A stretch of DNA of 64,000 nt from Histomonas meleagridis 2922-C6/04-290x. Its lineage: Eukaryota; Protista; Parabasalia. The number at the start of each line of letters is the position of its first letter. The first letter of the stretch is position 1. The stretch lies in NCBI GenBank assembly GCA_020184695.1, contig JAANOX010000080.1, forward strand, positions 186,001 to 250,000, given 5' to 3'. The translations under genes and the position numbers were made by a program. A model generated the notes under the pieces. That model worked only from the letters and a program-made list of their open reading frames with translations. It made no database searches and had not been told where the DNA came from. This document shows, in pieces, positions 453 through 55,224 of this stretch.

Positions 453-745
453 AATGTTAATATTAAAAATATTAAATTTTTGTAATTAATGTTTATTTTA
501 ATAATATATTATTCCTATAAAAGGAATTTATTAAAGTTATTTGAAACACCTCTTATAATTGCATCAAAAAATAGGAATACTGAAGTTGTTAAATTACTTC
601 TTGAACGAAATGATATTGATGTTAATGCGCAAAATAGGAAGGCAAAACAGCAATTTTTGTTGCATCCATATAGAATAATAAAGAAATAGTTGAATTACTT
701 AAAAGGAAAGAAGGAATTAAATATGAAGAAAGTCATTTGAAGTAA
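453..745 (+). pseudogene. Ankyrin-repeat fragment with one spacer-interrupted and one spacer-free junction
   Basis: NVNIKN|69-nt spacer 471-539|FETPLIIASKNRNTEVVKLLLERNDIDVNAQN, then (1-nt frameshift) GKTAIFVASI*NNKEIVELL. Confidence 0.75.
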
Positions 746-18979: not shown

Positions 18980-20010
18980 ATAAATATCTTTTGCATTAGC
19001 ATCAATTCCTTCTAAGTAACTGAGCTATTTCTGTATGACCTTTTGAAGATGCATAAATAAGTGCTGTATTAAATAATTTAAATAATTTTCAAATATAATT
19101 TTGAAATAATAAATTATTATAATAAATACAAAATAAAACAAATAAATATCTTTAGCATTAATATCAATTCCTTCTTGTTCAAGAAGTAATTTGACAATTT
19201 CTATATGACCATTTGATGATGCCAAAATAAGTGCTGTATTAAATAATTTAAATAATTTCCAAATATTATTTTGAAATATAAAATTATTAAAATAAATTTT
19301 AATTAAAACAAATAAATATCTTTAGCATTAATATCAATTCCTTCTTGTTCAAGAAGTAATTTAACTATTTCTATTCGGCCATTTGAAGATGCTAAAATTA
19401 TTAATGTTTTAAATAATTTCCAAATATTATTATAAAATTATTAAAATAAATTTCAAATAAAACAAATAAATATCTTTTATATTAATAACAATTCCTTTTT
19501 GTCCAAGTAAAAAGTTAAATATATTAACTTTTATAAAATAATCAATTGATTTGTTAAAAACGATTCAACAAACTTCATAATAGTTATCGAAATTATTGTC
19601 ATAAAGATATTTAAAGATATCATTTCGATGGAATTCAATTGCTGTCTCATATGCATCTTCAAATGATGAATGGTTTTGTTCACATAAATGAATAATTTCT
19701 TCATTTCCACCTGCAATTGCATATTTACCTGCATTATATACTTTTGCATTATTCATAAGTAAATATTTAAAACATTTAATTGATCCAAAAAATGTTGCAT
19801 AATCATTTAACGTGACATTTTCTTTATTAATAAATGAGCATCTTTCATTAAGTGATGGTTCAATTTCTTGATTATAATCAAAATTACTTTGTGATGACAT
19901 TTCTTGAAGTTTTTCGATTTCATCATTTCGCATTATTTGTGCAATCTCATTAGGATTAACTCCTTCTTTAATTAATTTTTTATGAAGTTCCCAATCATTT
20001 TGTGAAAGCT
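18980..20010 (-). pseudogene. 5'-truncated, internally deleted DUF3447/ankyrin copy with spacers of 58, 74 and 74 nt
   Basis: NDWELHKKLIKEGVNPN..DYATFFGSIKCF; spacers at 19414-19471, 19244-19317 and 19074-19147; last repeat frameshifted. Confidence 0.8.
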
Positions 20011-20221: not shown

Positions 20222-22639
20222 ATGGGGAACGAAAATAGCAAGCATTCAAGCGAAGATTCAACTTCTATGAAAACACCAGCTGAAATACAAGCATGTTTCC
20301 GAAATATACAAACATTTGAAAAAATAATTTTTGATTTAAAAAAGGACAATATATCAACATCAGTAAATACGATCATGAGTTTACATGACTTTAGTTATCC
20401 ACATACTTTTAATATACTCTTAAGTCAATTAATTTATTCTTCATATATTAGCCGAAAGGACGTTTCTTTTGAAGTTTATTTTCAATTCATCTATGAAATC
20501 ACACAAAGAGAAGAAGCGATTCAAAATTATTGCCGCCTTATTGATGTATTCACACAATTCATTATTAATGTTAATACCACAGAGTCATATCCTATTATTA
20601 ACATGTTAATTGAGCAAAATTATTTAACACCAAAAACATTTACAAAAAGATCTCTTTACTTTGCACATTATTTAGGAGATAATTTTTCTATGTTCATTAA
20701 AGAATCAAATTTACCATACTGTGTATATATGAACCAACATCTTAAAGAAATATCAAATAATGATTGGGAACTTCATAAGAAATATATTAAAAAAGGATGT
20801 AATCAAAGTAAAATCACAAAAATAATTCGAAAAGATAAAGTTGAAAAACTTCAAGAAATTGCATCTATCGAAAACTTTGATCCCAAACAAAAAATCATTC
20901 CATCATTATATGAATACCATTCTTTTGTTAATAAAGAGAATGTTACATTAATTGATTATGCTGCATTTTTCGGATCTGTAAAATGTTTTAAGTTTTTACT
21001 TTCTTATGATATTCCTATATATAGTGCATTTGTATTTGCACTTGCTGGTGGTAGTGATGAAATAATACATATGTGTGAACAATATAATGCTTCATTTGAA
21101 GGCACATTAGAAATAATAATACAATTCCATCGAAATGCTTTGTTTCATTATCTATTTGATAATAAACTTGTTCGATTTAATAATTTGGAAAATTTGGGTA
21201 AAAAATGTGTTATGTTTAATAACTATGAAATATTTACATTGTTACTTCAAAATGGTATGAAAATTAATGATGATATTATAAATGAATTTGCGAAAAATGG
21301 AAATTTATATATTATTAAAGATTTAATTCCAAGTTAACTAGGAAATGTTGAACTTGCAAATTATATAAAACAACAAACGAAAATTAATATTAATGAGAAA
21401 ATAATATTTTTGTTTTGTTTAATGTTTCATTTTAAGTTTTGGAGTTAATTCAATTTTTTTAAAACTGCACTTATTTGGGCAGCTAAAAGTGGAAACTTAG
21501 GATTAGTTAAATTCCTTCTTGAACAAAATGGAATTGATGTTAACCTTAGAAACATTTATTTGTTTTATTTTTTATTTATTATAATATTTTAATATTTCAT
21601 AATAACATTTGAAAATTATTTAAATTATTTCCATCTGCACTTATGTGTGCTTCTAAATCAGGTTCTACAGAAATTGTTAAATTACTTCTTTCGCATTATG
21701 AAATCGATGTTAATTGTAATGTTGTTTATATTTTTTATTTAATATTTCAAGATAATATTTGGAAATTTTTAAAATTATTTGAAACAGCTCTTATATTGGC
21801 AGTTAAAAATGGTCACAAAGAAATTGTTAAATTACTTGTTGAACATGATGGAATTAATATTAATTATGGTGATATTTCTTTATTTTATTTTATGTTTAAT
21901 TTAATAATTTGATATTTCATAATAAAATAAAATATTTACATAAAATATTTAAAACTGCACTTATTTGGGCAATTGAAAAAGGTTATGTAGAAATAGTTAA
22001 ATTACTTCTTTCACAATATCAAATCGATGTTAATGTTAGGAATATTTATTTGTTTTATTTAAAATTTATTAGTTTTATTTAAAATTTGTTTTAATAATTC
22101 CAAATTTCATAATAATATTTGGAAATTATTTATATTATTTTATACACCACTTATATTAGCATCTGAAAAAGGTAATAGTGAAATTGTTCAAATGCTTCTT
22201 GAGCATGAAGGAATTGATGTTAATTCTAAAAATATTTAAAATTTTTATTAAATGATAATTTTAATTTCTTGACATTCCAAAACAATTATTGGAAATTAGT
22301 TAAATTGTTTGAAACAGCACTTATGAAAGCAACGGCAGTCGGTATCGATGCATATATAACAAATTTACTTCTTGAGCATAAAGGAATTGATGTTAATGCT
22401 GTTGATGTTTATATTTTTAATTTAAAAATTATTTTATTATTTTAATATTTCAAAATAATTTTTGGAATATATTTATATTATACAAAACTGCACTTACAAA
22501 AGCGCATTTAGTTCACCGTAAAGAAATTATTCAATTTCTTCTCGAGTCTGGTGCAACTGATCCACAAGAAGAGAAAAAATATTTATTCATTTCATTTAGA
22601 ATTTTATTTATATTTTTCGAAAAATATAAATGCATCTAA
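20222..22639 (+). CDS. DUF3447/ankyrin gene with 7 spacer-interrupted repeats (in-frame TAA at 21335, so possibly a pseudogene)
   Basis: Starts MGNENSK; DUF3447-type core; spacers of 54, 74, 54, 74, 94, 74 and 74 nt starting at 21404, 21554, 21724, 21874, 22044, 22234 and 22407. Confidence 0.7.
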
Positions 22640-31500: not shown

Positions 31501-32190
31501 TTATTCTGTGACACCGTGATCATGAAGTAATGTAATTATTTCATTATATTCATTTTTTATTGCAAACATATGCGCTGACATAAATAATTCAAATATTTTC
31601 CAAATTTTATTTTGAAATATAATATTATTAAAATGATTGATATTTGAAACAAAAAAAATATTTTTCGCATTAAGATCAATTCCTTCTTGTTCGAGAAGCA
31701 ATTTAACTATTTCTATATGACCATTTTCAGATGCTTTAATAAGTGGTGTTTCAAATGTTTTAAACAATTTCCAAATATTATTTTGAAATATTATAAAATT
31801 ATTGAAACAAAATTTAAATAAAATAAATAAATATTTTTAGTATTAATATCATTTCCTTTTTGTTCAAGAAGTAGTTTCACTATTTCTGTATGACCATTTG
31901 AAGATGCTTCCATAAGTGCTGTATTAAATATTTAAAATAATTTTTAAATATTATCTTGAAATATAAAATTATTAAAATAGATTATAAATAAAACAAATAA
32001 ATATCTTTAGCATTAATATCAATTACTTCTTGAACAAGAAGTAATTAAACTATTTCTATTCGATTTTTAAAAGATGCTTTAATAAGTGCTGTATATAATA
32101 ATTAAAATAATTTCCAAATATTATTTTGAAATAAAAAATTATTAAAATATAGTCTATTAAATAAAACAAATAAATATCTTCAGCACAACT
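31501..32190 (-). pseudogene. Ankyrin array 3' fragment with spacers of 77, 74, 77 and 75 nt
   Basis: Spacers at 32099-32175, 31929-32002, 31756-31832 and 31585-31659; first repeat contains TAA; ends LHDHGVTE*; no DUF3447 part upstream. Confidence 0.8.
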
Positions 32191-46152: not shown

Positions 46153-48932
46153 TTGAATAATCCATCAGCCGACTTGAAATTCCTAATTGAGCTTGAGAAA
46201 ACTATATTCAGTTTAACTGAAGAAAACTTCCAGCCGTCCATCAAAAAAATATTGGAATTATTCGATTCAAATTATCCATACACATTTAATACTATTATAA
46301 GTAACATCGTTTATAATGCATTTTCATCACCAAAGTGTGTATTTGATGTTTACTTAAATTTTTTAGAGACACTTCAATCTAAAGAAGAAGAAATTAATCA
46401 AAATATTGTTAGACTAACATCAATTTTTATCAAACTTATATCTAAAATGAACACACAAGAATCTTATTATTTAATTGAGAAAATGATTATACAGAATTTG
46501 ATTGATAAAAATATTACTAGAAATATTAATTCAAAATATTTTGCACACTACAAAACAGAAATAGAAAACAAAAAGAGAAATTATTATCCATTTGAAAAAT
46601 ACTTTTTTGATAATTATGAAGAACTATCAAAGAATGATTTTGAACTTCATAAGAAATTAATTAAAGAAGGACATAATCCAAATGAAATTGCAAAGATAAT
46701 TCGAAATGATGAAATAGAAAAACTTCAAGAAATATCATCACAAACAAATTTTAATTTTGATCAAATAATTGAACCATCACTTTATGAAAGATGTTCATTC
46801 ATTAATCAAAAAAATGTTACACTAACTGATTATGCAGCATTTTTTTCTTCTATTAAATGTTTTAAATATTTACTTATGAATGGTGCAAAAGTAGAAAATA
46901 CAGGTAAATATGCAGTTGCAAGTGGAAATGAAGAAATCATTCATTTGTGTGAGCAAAATCATTCATCATTTGAAGGTGCATATGAAACAGCAATTATGTT
47001 CCATCGAAATGATATTTTCAAATATCTTTATGAAAGCAAATTAGAAAAAACACAGCCATATTATTTGGTAAGTTTTTGTATTAAAAAAGATAATTATAAT
47101 ATTCTAAAATATTTTGAAGAAGAAGGAATGAATGTTGATGATGATAATATAAATGAATCATCAAGAAATGGAAATTTATATCTTGTTAAATATTTCATTC
47201 AAAATAATCAAATTCCTAAAAATATTTTGCCATTTGCTTCAGAATCAGGAAATGTTGAACTTGTGAAATATATTTTAGATAAAGAAGGAATTGATGTTAA
47301 TGCAAAAAATATTCATTTTAATAATTTGTAATATGTTATAATAATTTGAAATATGTTTTAATAATTTATAATATGTTTTAATAATTTTATATATGTTTTA
47401 ATAATTTGAAATATGTTTTAATAATTTGAAACAGCACTTCATATAGCAGTTAGAAATAATAATATAGAAATAGTAAAATTACTTCTAGATAAAGAAGGAA
47501 TTGATGTTAATGCAAAAAATATTCATTTGAATAATTTGTAATATGTTTTAATAATTTGGAATATGTTTTAATAATTTGGAATATGTTTTAATAATTTAAA
47601 ATATGTTTTAATAATTTAGAATATATTTTAATAATTTTATATATGTTTTAATAATTTGGAATATGTTTTAATAATTTGGAATATGTTTTAAAAATTCGGA
47701 ATATGTTTTAATAATTTGAAATATGGTTTAATAATTTTATATATGTTTTAATAATTTGAAACAGCACTTCATATAGCAGTTAGAAATAATAATATTGAAA
47801 TCGTAAAATTACTTTTAGATAAAGAAGGAATTGATGTTAATGTAAAAGATATTTTGAATAATTTTATATATGTTTTAATAATTTTATATATGTTTTAATA
47901 ATTTGAAACAGCACTTCATATAGCAGTTAGAAATAATAATATAGAAATAGTAAAATTACTTTTAGATAAAGGAATTGATGTTCATGTAAAAACTATTCAT
48001 TTAAATAATTTAGAATGTGTTTTAATAATTTTATATATGTTTTAATAATTTTATATATGTTTTAATAAGTTAGAATATGTTTTAATAATTTTATATATGT
48101 TTTAATAATTTAGAATATGTTTTAATAATTTAAAATATATTTTAATAATTTTATATATGTTTTAATAATTTATAATATGTTTTAATAATTTAAAATATGT
48201 TTTAATAATTTTATATATGTTTTAATAATTTGAAACAGCACTTCATATAGCTGTTAGAAATATTAATATAGAAATAGTAAAATTACTTTTAGATAAAGGA
48301 ATTAATATTAATGCTAAAACTATTCATTTGAATAATTTTATATATGTTTTAATAATTTGAAATATGTTTTAATAATTTGGAATATGTTTTAATAATTTGA
48401 AATATGTTTTAATAATTTGAAACAGCACTTCATATAGCAGTTAGAAATAATAATATAGAAATAGTAAAATTACTTTTAGATAAAGGAATTAATATTAATG
48501 CAAAAACTATTCATTTGAATAATTTGTAATATGTTTTAATAATATAGAATATGTTTTAATAATTTATAATATGTTTTAATAATTTGGAATATGTTTTAAT
48601 AATTTAGAATATGTTTTAATAATTTAGAATATGTTTTAATAATTTGGAATATGTTTTAATAATTTAAAATATATTTTAATAATTTTATATATGTTTTAAT
48701 AATTTGGAATATGTTTTAATAATTTAAAATATATTTTAATAATTTTATATATGTTTTAATAATTTGGAATATGTTTTAATAATTTAGAATATGTTTTAAT
48801 AATTTAGAATATGTTTTAATAATTTGGAATATGTTTTAATAAATTGAAACAGCAAAACAAATTGCACAACAAAAAGGCTACACAGAAATAGTAAATTTAT
48901 TTGGTGAAAAAAGTACGAACCAATCGATATAA
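46153..48932 (+). CDS. DUF3447/ankyrin gene with 6 minisatellite-type spacers
   Basis: Intact DUF3447-type core; spacers 47311-47424 (114), 47521-47754 (234), 47851-47901 (51), 47995-48228 (234), 48322-48415 (94), 48509-48842 (334); all ankyrin segments open; ends NQSI*. No ATG at the 5' end of the ORF. Confidence 0.7.
47311..48842 (+). repeat. 20-nt minisatellite (consensus TTTGGAATATGTTTTAATAA) confined to inter-ankyrin spacers
   Basis: The 20-nt period is directly visible, interrupted only by 93-96-nt ankyrin segments. Confidence 0.95.
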
Positions 48933-49597: not shown

Positions 49598-52500
49598 ATG
49601 CAAGGAAAACCCACTTTGAGTTCTCGAAGAACATCAACATCAAGACAAGAAAATTTAATCAGGAGAACCCAAAATCCTTCACTTACCAATACAAAAAACA
49701 CGAATATGAATACAAAAAAAAATTCAGCTCCATTGCAATCATTAGAAAAAATTATATTTGAGTTAAAAAATGATCACATTGAAACATCTTCCAAATCTGC
49801 AATGAAGTATTTTGATAATAAATTTCCATATTCTTTTAATCTTTTCATTAGTAGTTTAATATATACAGCTTTTTTATCTCAAAGAAATGATGCAATTTTA
49901 TATTTGAATTTTATGAAATCTATTGAAACATTAGAAAAAGGCGTTCAATGTAACTCAATAATAAATGTTTTTAAGAATTATTTATTAAGATTAAAATCAC
50001 AAGAATCAAATCATTTACTTACAAAAATGATCGAATATGAACTAATTCAACCTGATTTTGTTCAGAATAAGAGATCATTATGTTATGCAAATTATTATTC
50101 AGATGAAGAAATTCATAGTTATAATTATAAATTTCAAGAACAGTTTCTTATAGATCTTGAAGAACTATCAAAGAATGATTGGGAACTTCATAAGCAATTA
50201 ATAAAAGAAGGAGTTAATCCAAATGAAATATTAAAAATAATTCGAAATGATGAAATTGAAAAACTTCAAGAAATTTCATCACAAACAAACTTCGATTTTA
50301 ATCAACATGTTAAACCATCACTTTATGAAAGATATTCATTTATTAATGAAAAGAATGTTTCAATAATTGATTTTGCAGCCTTTTTCGGAGCAATTAAATG
50401 TTTTCGATTTTTACTTATGAATGGTTCTACAATCGAAAACACATTAAAATATGCAATTGCTGGTGGAAATTTAGAGATTACATATTTATGTGAACAAAAC
50501 ATTTTATCAATTGAAGAAGTATATAAAACAGCAATTGAATTTCATCGGAATGAAATTTTTCAATATTTTTACGAAAAGAAAAAAATACCAAATAAAGATT
50601 TAACAAAATATGGAATGCATTGCTTAAGATATTGTAATTTCAAAATGTTTATGTTTTTAAAATCAGTTGGTATGAAAATAAACAAAGAAATTTTAGAAGA
50701 AGCAATATTAAATGGTAATACATTCTTTATCAAACGATATATAACAGATAAAAAATATTTTCCAATCATTTCAAATTGTCCAAATGCGTCAAGAAATTAT
50801 GAGTTAATTAAAATGATTCTTGAACAAGGCGACTTTAATAAAATTACACTAAATATTGGTTTAACTTGTTTAAAATTTGTTTTAATTGATTTATGTTTTC
50901 TATTTCAATTTAAATTTTCTTTAATTTGTTTAATGCACAACTTTTAATAGCTGCAGAAAATGGTTATTATGAAACAATACAATGGCTTTCTCAACAAACT
51001 GGGTTTGATGTTAATTATAGTGGTATATTTTTGTTTTATTTGAAATTAATTTTAATAATTTGATATATAAAAATAATAATCGGAACTTACTTCTATTATT
51101 TGAAACTTTATTAATGTTAGCAATTAAAAATTATCAGATGGAAGTAATTAGATTTCTTCTTAAACATAAAAAAATTGATATTAACGCGAAAGACATTTAT
51201 TTATTTTATATAGAATTTATTTTATTAATTTTATATTTCAATGTTATATTTGAAAATTGTTCTAAATATTTAAAACAGCGCTAATGAAAGCATGTCAAAA
51301 TGGTTATACAGAAATAGTTAAGTTACTTCTTAAACAAAAAGGAATTGATGTTGCTGCTAAAAATACTTGTTTGTTTTGTTTAGGGTTTATTTTTATATTT
51401 TTGGATTTGCAAATGGTTTTTGGAAATTATTCGAATCATTTGAAACAGCACTTACTTATGCATCGCAAAAAGGTTGTATTGAAATAGTTAAAATACTTCT
51501 TAAACAAGAAGGAATTAATAGCAATACTAAGAATAATTGTTTTAAATGTTTCATATTTATTCTAATAATTTGATAATTAAAAATATTATTTAAAATTTAT
51601 CAAGACCTTTTGAAAAGGCACTTTTTTTTGCTGTTGAAAAAAATTATATTGAAATAGTTAAATTACTTCTTGAACAAAAAGGGATTGCTCTTAATACTAG
51701 TAATATTTACTTATATTGTTTTGGATTTATTTTATTAATTTAATGTTTCAAAGTAATAATAGGAAATCGTTTAAGCTATTTGATACAGTCCTTATTTATG
51801 CATCTCATCGTGGTTATTTATATACCGTTAAAATACTTCTTGAACAAGAAGGAATTGATATTAATGCTAAAAATATTTATTTGCTTTATTTGGTATTTAT
51901 TGTAATAATTTTTAATTTTAAAATAATATTTGGAAATTATTTAAATTATTTTATACAGCACTTATGTCTGCATCTTATAATTGTCATACAGAAATAGTTA
52001 AATTACTTCTTGAACAAGAAGGAATTGATATTAATGATAAAAATAATATTTATTTTAATAATCTGATATTTCAAAATAATATTTGGAAATTATTTAAATT
52101 ATTTTATACAGCACTTATGTTAGCATCTTCAAATGGCCGAATAGAAATAGTTAAATTACTTCTTGAACAAGAAGGAATTGATATTAATGCTAAAGATATT
52201 TATTTGTTTTATTTAATGTTTGTTTTAATAATTTTGTATTTAAAAATAAAATTTGGAAATTATTTTAAACATTTAAAACAGCACTTATGCATGCATCTGA
52301 AAAAGGTCATACAGAAATCGTTAAATTACTTCTTGAACAAGAAGGTATTAATATTAATGCTAAAGACATTTATTTGTTTTATTTAAAATTTATTTGATTG
52401 ATTTGATATTTAAAAGTAATATTTGGAAATTATTTATATTATTTAAAACAGCACTTATATTAGCATCTGAAAAAGGTCATACAGAAATCGTTAAATTACT

Positions 52501-53562
52501 TCTTGAACAAGAAGGTATTAATATTAATGCTAAAGATATTTATTTATTTTATTTAAAATTTATTTAAATAATTTGATATTTCAAAATAATATTTGGAAAT
52601 TATTTTAAAAATTTGAAACAGCACTTATGCATGCATCTGAAAAAGGTCATACAGAAATCGTTAAATTACTTCTTGAACAAGAAGGTATTGACATTAATGA
52701 TAAAGACATTTATTTGTTTTACTTAAAATTTATTATATTAATTTGATATTTCAAAATAATATTTGGAAATTTATTAAATTATTTTGGACAGCACTTTTTA
52801 TATCATATTATTGTACACGTCAAAAAGATGTTTTTAAATTACTTATTAAGGATGAAAGAACAAATCTTAACTTTCAATATATTTGCACAAACAATTTCAA
52901 ATTTGTATAAATTATTTGATATTTACTTAAATAATTTAAAATTTTAACTAAAAATATGGAATTTATTTTGGTTGTTTGAAACTATTTTTACGCTTGCAAT
53001 AAAAGATCTTCCTATTGAAATGATTAAATTTCTTCTTGAACAAAAACAAATTGATATCAATAAGAAAAATTTTCATTTCTTCATTTTGCAATTTATTTCG
53101 AATATTTCATGTTTATAATGAATGTATGGAATTTATTTAAATCATTTGACACACCGCTTATGGTTGCAATTCAAAATGGTAAACTTGAAGTTGTTAAATT
53201 ATTATGTAAACAAGAAGGAATTAATATCAATGCAAAAAATATTTATATTTTTTATTTGCAATTTTATTTTGGAATTTGATTTTTCAAAAAAATATATGGA
53301 GTTTGCTCTATATTTTTGATACAGCACTTATGATTGCAGCTTCAAAGGATAATGCTGATATTGTTAAATTACTCTTGAAACAAAAAGAAATCAATGTTGA
53401 TGCAAAAAATATTTCTTTGTTAATTCTAAAATGGTATATATTCATCGTATTTATCATTTCTTTTTTTGGAATTTATTAAAATTATATCATACTGCACTTG
53501 TAATAGCAAATAATAGGGGCCACACGCAAGTTGTTGAAATTCTTCATAATAAATCTCATTGA
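49598..53562 (+). CDS. DUF3447/ankyrin gene with 16 spacer-interrupted repeats (about 957 aa if spacers are removed leaving 6 nt each)
   Basis: Spacers start at 50855, 51025, 51195, 51365, 51535, 51705, 51875, 52045, 52198, 52368, 52538, 52708, 52881, 53071, 53241 and 53411. Fourteen are 74 nt, one 57, one 94. All downstream ankyrin segments are open; ends NKSH*. Confidence 0.75.
50855..53484 (+). repeat. 170-nt tandem lattice (96-nt ankyrin segment plus 74-nt spacer)
   Basis: Spacer starts recur every 170 nt except around the 57- and 94-nt variants. Confidence 0.92.
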
Positions 53563-53811: not shown

Positions 53812-55224
53812 TCAAATTGATTTCGCAGCATTTTTTATAACCGAAATTGCGGTTCTTATTTGGTCCTCAGAGTGTGCCTGTGAGATGAAGATTTTAATTG
53901 TTGGGCGCCCAGCCTTCAAGTCCCTCATTCTCACGAATTTTGCTTTAGCGATTGCGACCGGGTTTTCATCCTCAGCGCATTTATCGCAAATTCTTTGTAG
54001 GATCTCATCCTCCTCTTTAATCGTTGCCTTAGCTTCCTTTAAACGCAAGTGTATAAGAGGAGAAATTTCGTCGCCTAAAATGTCAAAACCGTCGATGCCG
54101 TTAAGCTCATTTCGAGCGAGCTGAATGTTGGAACGGAGCTTCCTGATCCTTTCTTCGCCATCTTGCTCGACTATCTCAATTGCCTTGGTTGCTGCAACGA
54201 CATTAAAGCAGGGAGGAGATGCAGAAAAGATATACGCATGTGATGCAAGTCTTTGATGTGCACAAATTTCTTTGGTACCAACAGAAAAACCACCAAGAGA
54301 TGCAAAGGCAGGGCCATATGAACCAATTGAAACTTCGATTAAATCTCGTGGAATATCATAATGTTCACAAAGTCCTTTTCCAGTCTTACCAACACAGCCA
54401 AAAGAGTATGTCTCATCAATGATTAACCGGAGACAAAACTCTTTGCGTAATTGAATTAATGTAGGAAGATCTAAAAGTGAGCCATCATTTGTAAATAAGC
54501 CTTCAGTAACAACCCAACGATTGCATTTATCCCACCTAGCAAATGTCTTTTTGTTAGACGCAACTTTTTCGCGCAAATCGTCCATGTCATTATGCTTATA
54601 TGGAATAACTTTGCAACGTGTGAGTTCGCTTCCAAGTTGGCATGCAAACCATGCGCCATCATCAACAAATAAAATATCTGAGTTTTTGATGAGTGATTGT
54701 ATAATTGATGTTGTAGTTGCAAATGGATAACAATAATTAACTGTCTCTTCAGAACCAAGGAATTTAGCCATTTCTTCTTCTACTTTAAGATGTACATCCA
54801 TTGTACCATAAAATTGACGTGGTCCACAAGCACCAACAGCATATTTGTCGATGGCAGCAAGTGAGGCATCTATGATTTCTTGGTTCATGTTAAGTCCGTA
54901 AAAGTTTGGTACACCAAGATTTATCATTTTCTTTCCATCAATTTCGATTGTATCACTAGGTCCTGACGTTATTGTCTTATCTCTAAATATTGATTTATCA
55001 ATTACAGCATCATCTAAATCTGGAATTAGAGGCTTTGGTTTCCAATCAGCAATGATTTCATCTTCTTCGGCTTCAGTAATATCGTCAGTTGGATCATGAA
55101 TTGGTTCTGGACTTCTCAACAAAAGCAAAACAATGAAAACAATCAGACCGATCTCAACAAAAAGATGGATAGGTGATTGATTCCATAAGAAGGACACTAG
55201 TTTCTCGAGAAGTGGTACAATCAT
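53812..55224 (-). CDS. SPTLC1: Serine palmitoyltransferase subunit 1 (LCB1)
   Basis: N-terminal hydrophobic segment, EIIADWKP.PL, KYAVGACGPRQFYGTMDVHL, LIIDET.SFG, GGF, Y.FSAS.P; no obvious PLP lysine, as expected for LCB1. Confidence 0.93.
   Translation of the reverse strand: MIVPLLEKLVSFLWNQSPIHLFVEIGLIVFIVLLLLRSPEPIHDPTDDITEAEEDEIIADWKPKPLIPDLDDAVIDKSIFRDKTITSGPSDTIEIDGKKMINLGVPNFYGLNMNQEIIDASLAAIDKYAVGACGPRQFYGTMDVHLKVEEEMAKFLGSEETVNYCYPFATTTSIIQSLIKNSDILFVDDGAWFACQLGSELTRCKVIPYKHNDMDDLREKVASNKKTFARWDKCNRWVVTEGLFTNDGSLLDLPTLIQLRKEFCLRLIIDETYSFGCVGKTGKGLCEHYDIPRDLIEVSIGSYGPAFASLGGFSVGTKEICAHQRLASHAYIFSASPPCFNVVAATKAIEIVEQDGEERIRKLRSNIQLARNELNGIDGFDILGDEISPLIHLRLKEAKATIKEEDEILQRICDKCAEDENPVAIAKAKFVRMRDLKAGRPTIKIFISQAHSEDQIRTAISVIKNAAKSI

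Follow-up and report, generated by a model that had tools for sequence, protein, structure and literature searches.

The 64,000-nucleotide (nt) stretch of Histomonas meleagridis DNA analyzed here, hereafter the window, covers positions 186,001–250,000 of contig JAANOX010000080.1 (assembly GCA_020184695.1, forward strand) and has a G+C content of 28%, in agreement with the published genome (PMC8529796). On its plus strand, at 49598–53562 counted from the first letter of the window, lies an ankyrin gene without annotation, adjacent to a minus-strand gene (53812–55224) for a 470-amino-acid (aa) aminotransferase, whose identical product is found on contig WSYJ01000036.1 of assembly GCA_020186115.1. 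The open reading frame (ORF) that begins the ankyrin gene, 49598–50947, reads into the first of 16 T-rich spacers and then stops, yielding ~449 aa; this supports the original prediction that standard annotation truncates the gene, set against a predicted product of ~957 aa (958 aa by the parse presented below). The spacers resolve into 64 inserts of 17 nt separated by single codons, and excising all 64 (1088 nt) joins the gene into a single 2877-nt ORF for 958 aa, which has no internal stop and ends at its natural TGA. We think it fairly probable that each insert would be excised at the RNA level as a non-GT-AG micro-intron, leaving exons of 3 nt.

Anatomy of the ankyrin gene and its spacers

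The first coding block (49598–50854, plus strand) comprises 419 codons, carries a DUF3447 domain and runs unbroken to the N codon before loop 1, as delineated by its ORF, by PF11929 and by homologues. The domain scores 37.9 bits with PF11929 against a cut-off of 26.9, and homologues of the gene contain both DUF3447 and Ank. Downstream, fifteen ankyrin repeat bodies (T-A-L ... I-D-I-N-A-K-D/N) alternate with the loops between 50935 and 53410 on the same strand, each 90 nt long apart from one of 93 nt and each stop-free in its own frame; a final partial body of 23 codons followed by the TGA stop closes the ORF (53491–53562, plus strand). In the conceptual 958-aa product the loops recur exactly every 34 residues. 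Assignment to the ankyrin proteins rests on a DUF3447 match above cut-off and on tandem repeats at a 34-aa spacing, where 33–34 aa and the pattern G-x-T-A-L ... D-x-x-G are expected. A profile of the repeats, searched against 1.8 billion representatives, matches 263,445 ankyrin proteins, among which generic giant ankyrin proteins dominate. The gene itself was not found in the protein database, where paralogues and metagenome relatives, with 34–51% identity, come closest. Taken together, 49598–53562 is probably one gene for a DUF3447/ankyrin protein of 958 aa whose C-terminal part consists of 16 repeats, each of 34 aa.

The 16 junctions between 50855 and 53484 conform to the original prediction in number and length: a length of exactly 74 nt is shared by fourteen spacers, and the other two measure 57 nt (52045–52101) and 94 nt, the last value assuming an upstream segment that ends at 52880 (an alternative boundary gives 97 nt). 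Four further loci in the window show the same insert architecture. Every one of the 16 spacers contains stops in at least one frame, and passing a 74-nt spacer displaces the reading frame downstream by 2. Their base composition is 53% T, 34% A, 8% G and 5% C. Tandem Repeats Finder reports a 20-nt sub-period within them, and spacer lengths across the window obey 14+20n (54, 74, 94, 114, 234 and 334 nt).

If the count starts at the D/N codon and runs to the T codon of T-A-L, taking in both the spacer and what had been read as 'F-x', the typical interval is 80 nt, which makes four units of 20 nt. Each unit opens with a T-rich insert of 17 nt (RTTT-N9-ATTT) and closes with one codon, and every insert sits between codons (phase 0). 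The gene contains four inserts in each of 14 loops, three in one and five in another; the first of the 64 falls at 50855–50871 and the last at 53471–53487. This anatomy replaces the earlier picture of one fixed-length spacer splitting each repeat at one site, since 74 nt plus 'F-x' amounts to four inserts, each then followed by one loop codon. The 'F' of F-x-T-A-L, formerly taken as a codon, is formed by the TTT that ends the last (fourth) insert, and retaining 6 nt per spacer, as had been proposed, gives the wrong register. Length variants follow the same logic: the 57-nt spacer lacks its first insert while keeping the codon of that insert (three inserts, N-NDGY-TAL), the 94-nt spacer is five units (Y-QDKGE-TIF), and a 77-nt spacer is four inserts plus one additional codon. 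The 54/74/94/114 quantization, the 57-nt variant with one insert lost and the conserved GGA, which encodes the loop Gly, are thereby explained.

The insert profile (n = 115) is conserved at both ends. Position 1 is mostly A (82%) or G (13%), positions 2–4 are T in 81–90%, position 14 is A in 82% and positions 15–17 are T in 90–94%. Among the 64 inserts of the gene, 52 start with AT, AA or AC, six with GT and four with TT; TT ends 54 of the 64, and the commonest pairs of ends are AT..TT (34), AA..TT (11) and GT..TT (4), with the others scattered. A de novo parser using a crude profile fully recovered 11 of the 16 loops and was misrouted at weaker inserts. No isolated 17-nt inserts joining long ORFs were found above chance elsewhere in the window, suggesting that within these 64 kb the inserts are confined to ankyrin loops.

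On the plus strand, the unit parse places four-unit loops at 50855–50934 (loop 1, N-KYKN-AQL), 51025–51104 (loop 2, G-EDGE-TLL), 51195–51274 (loop 3, D-RYEK-TAL), 51365–51444 (loop 4, N-RWGE-TAL), 51535–51614 (loop 5, N-HDKE-KAL), 51705–51784 (loop 6, N-WNGD-TVL) and 51875–51954 (loop 7, N-GLGY-TAL). Loop 8, which holds the 57-nt spacer, spans 52045–52107 as one codon and then three units. Four units again make up loops 9 (52198–52277, D-NCGK-TAL), 10 (52368–52447, D-KDGK-TAL), 11 (52538–52617, D-KDGE-TAL) and 12 (52708–52787, D-KDGW-TAL). Loop 13, with the 94-nt spacer, occupies 52881–52980 as five units and follows a degenerate repeat body (52788–52880); the four-unit loops 14 (53071–53150, N-AHGD-TPL), 15 (53241–53320, N-ADGD-TAL) and 16 (53411–53490, N-KYGH-TAL) complete the series.

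Coding constraint and RNA coverage

The register of the loop codons was examined in 156 twenty-nt units from the main gene, the four other window loci and two metagenome relatives. None of the 156 triplets at unit positions 18–20 is a stop, and G+C content peaks at these positions (0.22–0.34, vs 0.01–0.15 within the inserts); one base upstream, about half of the units contain stops. Read in register, the triplets spell the canonical ankyrin hairpin D-x-x-G-x-T, for example K-D-G-K, K-D-G-E, K-D-G-W and A-D-G-D, with N-S-G-R, H-E-G-R and Y-D-G-K in relatives, and D-x-x-G-x-T is also present in unsplit ankyrin proteins of the same subfamily. Gly stands at its canonical place in 13 of the 16 loops of the main gene. 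Its codon is GGA there, GGT in the relative L002 and GGC in the H. meleagridis paralogue L004, a synonymous difference among loci that points to a codon and not to a conserved 'signal'.

All 15 full ankyrin bodies are open in their own frame, as originally predicted, and stops occur in 10 of the 15 and in all 15 in the other two frames. The bodies diverge from their own consensus by 6–50 of 90 nt, and a star-tree simulation of neutral decay gives a joint probability of ~4e-6 that all of them stay open. Coding constraint on the ankyrin segments, claimed from the outset, is supported by this comparison of the bodies with neutral expectation.

The same data bear on an alternative in which the array is dead, the product would be the 449-aa read-through ORF with its insert-encoded hydrophobic tail, and the repeats would form a decaying or satellite-like 170-bp array homogenized by recent amplification or gene conversion. 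Such an array would suit the pairwise ratio of nonsynonymous to synonymous substitution (dN/dS) among the aligned repeats, a measure suggested in the original prediction, which at ~0.86 is uninformative at best for an AT-biased, internally diversifying repeat family; codon-position entropy is uninformative in the same setting. It would also suit spacers as indel-free as the coding parts, the decayed look of some family members in the window (540–720, with a frameshift and an in-frame TAG) and the acceptance of truncated models by annotators. We nonetheless regard a dead array as unlikely, given that the stop-free state extends from the 15 bodies to the 156 in-register triplets, that canonical residues are retained in copies only ~50% identical and in several taxa, and that the distal array is transcribed.

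Transcription was assessed by the share of sampled query 31-mers present in contigs from DNA and RNA sequencing runs. For the distal array (52612–53562), DNA runs hold 0.95 of the words, and RNA runs hold 0.42, 0.34, 0.33 and 0.30 (2023 study) and 0.09 (2013 run). If RNA contained the bodies only, 345 of 921 words (0.375) would be expected, which multiplied by 0.95 gives 0.36; retained inserts would give ~0.95, and an untranscribed array 0. Across the whole locus the shares are 0.80 in DNA runs and 0.36–0.39 in RNA runs, with 0.44 expected for bodies only. The distal array is therefore transcribed, and the RNA contigs are without most of the words in the DNA contigs, in the proportion expected of insert-free RNA. 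Of the three mechanisms that had been offered for the spacers, RNA-level removal fits these shares, translational bypassing is disfavored by them and by its take-off and landing requirement, and DNA-level excision is disfavored by the 0.95 share in DNA runs.

Splice signals and possible modes of removal

Inspection of spacers and inserts agrees with the original prediction that neither GT-AG borders nor a trichomonad ACTAAC...AG end is present. A consistent GT-AG is not possible across the spacers: the sole recurrent AG comes from the T-A codons (ACAG), is out of frame with the sole GT and is missing in several copies, and GT-AG in alternative registers was ruled out on these grounds. In the L001 spacer there is no G besides the GG of TTTGGA. 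For the inserts themselves, only 6 of 64 begin with the GT of a U2-type 5' end (GT/GC), none of the 64 ends in AG, and their ends (ATTT ... TTT) differ from the ATATCC ... AC of U12-type AT-AC introns. No trichomonad ACTAA/ACTAAC...AG motif was found in or around the spacers, insert length is 17 nt vs the 23–196 nt required, and a scan of the window for trichomonad-type introns returned nothing convincing. Consensus RNA structure of the spacers was likewise not found, RNAalifold being empty and single-sequence z-scores being ~0 for 21 of 22 spacers, so that a euglenid-type structure pairing the ends is also missing.

Comparison with known introns places the inserts outside each described type. 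Introns measure 15–16 nt in Stentor coeruleus, 18 nt in Bigelowiella natans and 23–25 nt in type B of Trichomonas vaginalis (PMC12316389, PMC9505925); the shortest known, 15 nt in Stentor and 18 nt in Bigelowiella, are both canonical (PMC12316389). In T. vaginalis, 63 of 63 validated introns are GT/AG, with ACTAA fused to a 12-nt 3' motif and lengths of 23–196 nt (PMC12316389), and the published H. meleagridis genome describes scarce introns, at most one per gene, with ankyrin genes unmentioned (PMC8529796). The inserts share with tiny spliceosomal introns a very short, narrowly fixed length, a U-rich interior and, putatively, removal at the RNA level. They differ in their ends (AT/AA/GT...TT vs GT/AG throughout) and in forming strings of 2–5, up to 17, with one codon between; and whereas trichomonad introns carry ACTAA, are single per gene and number ~63 per genome, the inserts lack ACTAA and reach 64 in one gene. 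Nonconventional introns of euglenids are reported to be nuclear, non-GT-AG and variable in length and borders, with a stable stem joining their ends (PMC4770533). The inserts resemble them in being nuclear and non-GT-AG, and depart from them in a length fixed at 17 nt and in having no detectable structure.

Exons of a single codon have a counterpart in the 3-nt microexons of animals and plants, which are rare, lie between long canonical GT-AG introns and need enhancers; the single-codon exons proposed here would differ by standing in runs between 17-nt inserts. In the Rogers model, introns are gained by tandem duplication, with GT-AG introns arising from duplicated AGGT. The 20-nt insert-plus-codon unit resembles minisatellites and this model in acting as a tandem repeat, expanded at 47311–48842, and departs from the model in showing no duplicated-AGGT signal. 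Full-text literature searches covering Histomonas, Dientamoeba, parabasalids, introns, splicing and ankyrin turned up no account of the insert arrangement, which appears to be undescribed in the searchable literature and matches no described intron type.

A single non-canonical intron of ~68–74 nt per junction, removed whole and leaving D-x-x-F-x-T or D-F-x-T, is improbable. It would fit the conserved 74-nt length, and the RNA word shares suit whole-spacer removal equally well, but it offers no account of G+C-rich, stop-free triplets that spell K-D-G-K at 20-nt intervals, or of length differences of 17, 20 or 3 nt. Stops in copies of several taxa leave no common register for the 6 kept nt (in L001 TAA is the second codon after D, and in L004 TAA directly precedes T-A-L), F at the Gly position would be unusual for ankyrin, and the empty RNAalifold result and z-scores of ~0 show no consensus RNA structure.

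Still less likely is translational bypassing or frameshifting, in which the inserts would stay in the mRNA and ribosomes would hop 17 nt, 64 times. Bypassing reportedly occurs in T4 gene 60 and in the 'byps' of Magnusiomyces capitatus mitochondria, where, as here, many short non-coding inserts with stops lie inside coding sequence. The inserts are as short as bypass gaps, and a few copies have a U_UUA_AAA heptamer in their 0 frame. Bypassing, however, would leave the insert in the mRNA, against which speaks the finding that RNA runs hold only about one-third of the DNA-run words, and it depends on a matched pair of take-off and landing codons, yet the codon before an insert (GAT, AAT, AAA, GGA and so on) never equals the last insert triplet (TTT/ATT). 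The heptamer is missing from most copies, no stimulatory structure was found, and 64 serial events would leave nearly no product. Frameshifting by −1 was rejected as well, the heptamer being limited to few copies. Excision at the DNA level from an expressed somatic copy, in the manner of the internal eliminated sequences of ciliates, would suit short, AT-rich, precisely bounded elements, yet is the least plausible reading of all, as DNA runs from culture hold 0.95 of the words, inserts included, parabasalids have no known division into germline and soma, and the boundaries follow no TA...TA rule.

If the 17-nt inserts are indeed excised from RNA one by one, the machinery would have to gauge a distance of 17 nt from an RUUU start to an AUUU end; so constant a length, with conservation at either end, suggests that both ends would be recognized at once, as by a ruler. 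A strongly modified spliceosome might do the excising, or a different agent altogether, and the A at insert position 14 could, speculatively, serve as a branch point. The family would grow and shrink by gain or loss of whole inserts or of 20-nt insert-plus-codon units, which would produce the 14+20n spacer lengths.

Several observations weigh against excision of individual inserts, in addition to the dN/dS value above. Word shares give the amount, not the position, of the words held, and uniform partial coverage of unspliced RNA is compatible with them too; the ratio between the distal-array and whole-locus queries favors exon-only coverage by just ~1 standard error. No RNA-derived product of the gene is present in the protein database, which holds no products of the organism's RNA runs. 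Some inserts fit the profile poorly, and one 70-nt junction of the paralogue (L004:5340–5409) does not parse into codons and exact 17-nt inserts, so that either insert lengths of 15–20 nt occur or this repeat is defective. To our knowledge, consecutive 17-nt introns with AU/GU...UU ends and 3-nt exons have no mechanistic precedent. Our broader proposal is tentative, and we hold it somewhat less likely to be right than wrong: Histomonas and its relatives may possess a ruler-type RNA excision that acts on phase-0 inserts of exactly 17 nt (RUUU-N9-AUUU), needs neither GU-AG nor a branch motif nor structure, and leaves single-codon exons; the inserts would multiply as 20-nt units in ankyrin hairpin loops, and hundreds of genes may be hidden from standard annotation.

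Related loci and consequences for the family

Within the window, the insert architecture recurs with a 170-nt periodicity at 18986–19522 (−), 21458–22546 (+), 31660–32095 (−) and 47233–48899 (+). Two of the first three arrays have repeat bodies 75–91% identical in protein to the main gene, suggesting recent exchange between loci. The neighboring gene at 47233–48899 has loops grown to 5–17 insert-plus-codon units, a near-pure 20-nt minisatellite with the insert consensus ATATGTTTTAATAATTT; its expanded spacers lie at 47311–47424, 47521–47754, 47995–48228, 48322–48415 and 48509–48842. Across its three longest loops (41 units) there is no in-register stop, and the predicted loops, rich in Gly, Lys, Arg, Tyr and Glu, reach up to 17 residues. 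At 540–720 (+), the last repeat of a gene starting before the window shows the appearance of an insert-free loop (N-x-E-G-K-T-A-I); its frameshift is of 1 nt within the loop and its TAG lies in the body, and it is probably a decayed terminal repeat.

Beyond the window, the architecture is present in the paralogue L004 (GCA_020184695.1) and, among contigs from metagenomes, in at least three further taxa, represented by L001 (23% G+C), L002/L003 and L006/L007 (25% G+C). N-terminal domains are only 34–51% identical between the taxa that have it. Insert number varies: junctions of 43 and 63 nt in relatives correspond to two and three inserts, respectively, and one loop of L004 has just two (D-NRGW-TAL). 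The relative with in-frame 57-nt spacers has three inserts per loop (N-ENGW-TAL, D-INGR-TAL), and its frame is kept by arithmetic, three inserts making 51 nt. These open 57-nt spacers, in P0172 and others, had prompted consideration of a translated loop insertion of 18–19 aa, which was rejected since the same copies parse into canonical loops and that frame contains stops in ~40% of H. meleagridis copies. A DDE_Tnp_IS1595 transposase gene (L002:4380–5279) lies 2.5 kb downstream of a relative's split ankyrin gene.

Annotated models of the split genes in relatives and in L004 are truncated as well. Read-through of the first insert string (50855–50947; proteins P0001–P0013) gives truncated models a hydrophobic C-terminal tail of ~30 aa, rich in I, L, F and Y, which is either an annotation artifact or the product of unprocessed RNA and could mimic a tail anchor. 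In L006/L007 and proteins P0172–P0180 (ENA ERZ25039387, ERZ25039391; 25% G+C), most loops have three inserts, 51 nt in all, in frame and stop-free, so that the output of gene callers includes 'proteins' in which each repeat contains a 17-aa filler (…VYFNNLIFQNNIWNFFKLF…).

For the ankyrin/DUF3447 family of this poultry pathogen and its gut relatives, the consequence would be misannotation as truncated proteins of ~400 aa with artificial hydrophobic tails, alongside 'proteins' in which gene callers have translated the inserts; proteomic and comparative studies of Histomonas would then be using wrong models. Should the inserts be excised from RNA, they would represent a novel means by which eukaryotic coding sequence is interrupted and rejoined, in which pieces shorter than any parabasalid intron, devoid of every known splice signal and arranged in strings, are removed around one-codon exons. 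This would challenge ideas on the minimal requirements of exon/intron recognition, and H. meleagridis would offer a tractable system for its study, because the organism is culturable and public DNA and RNA data exist.

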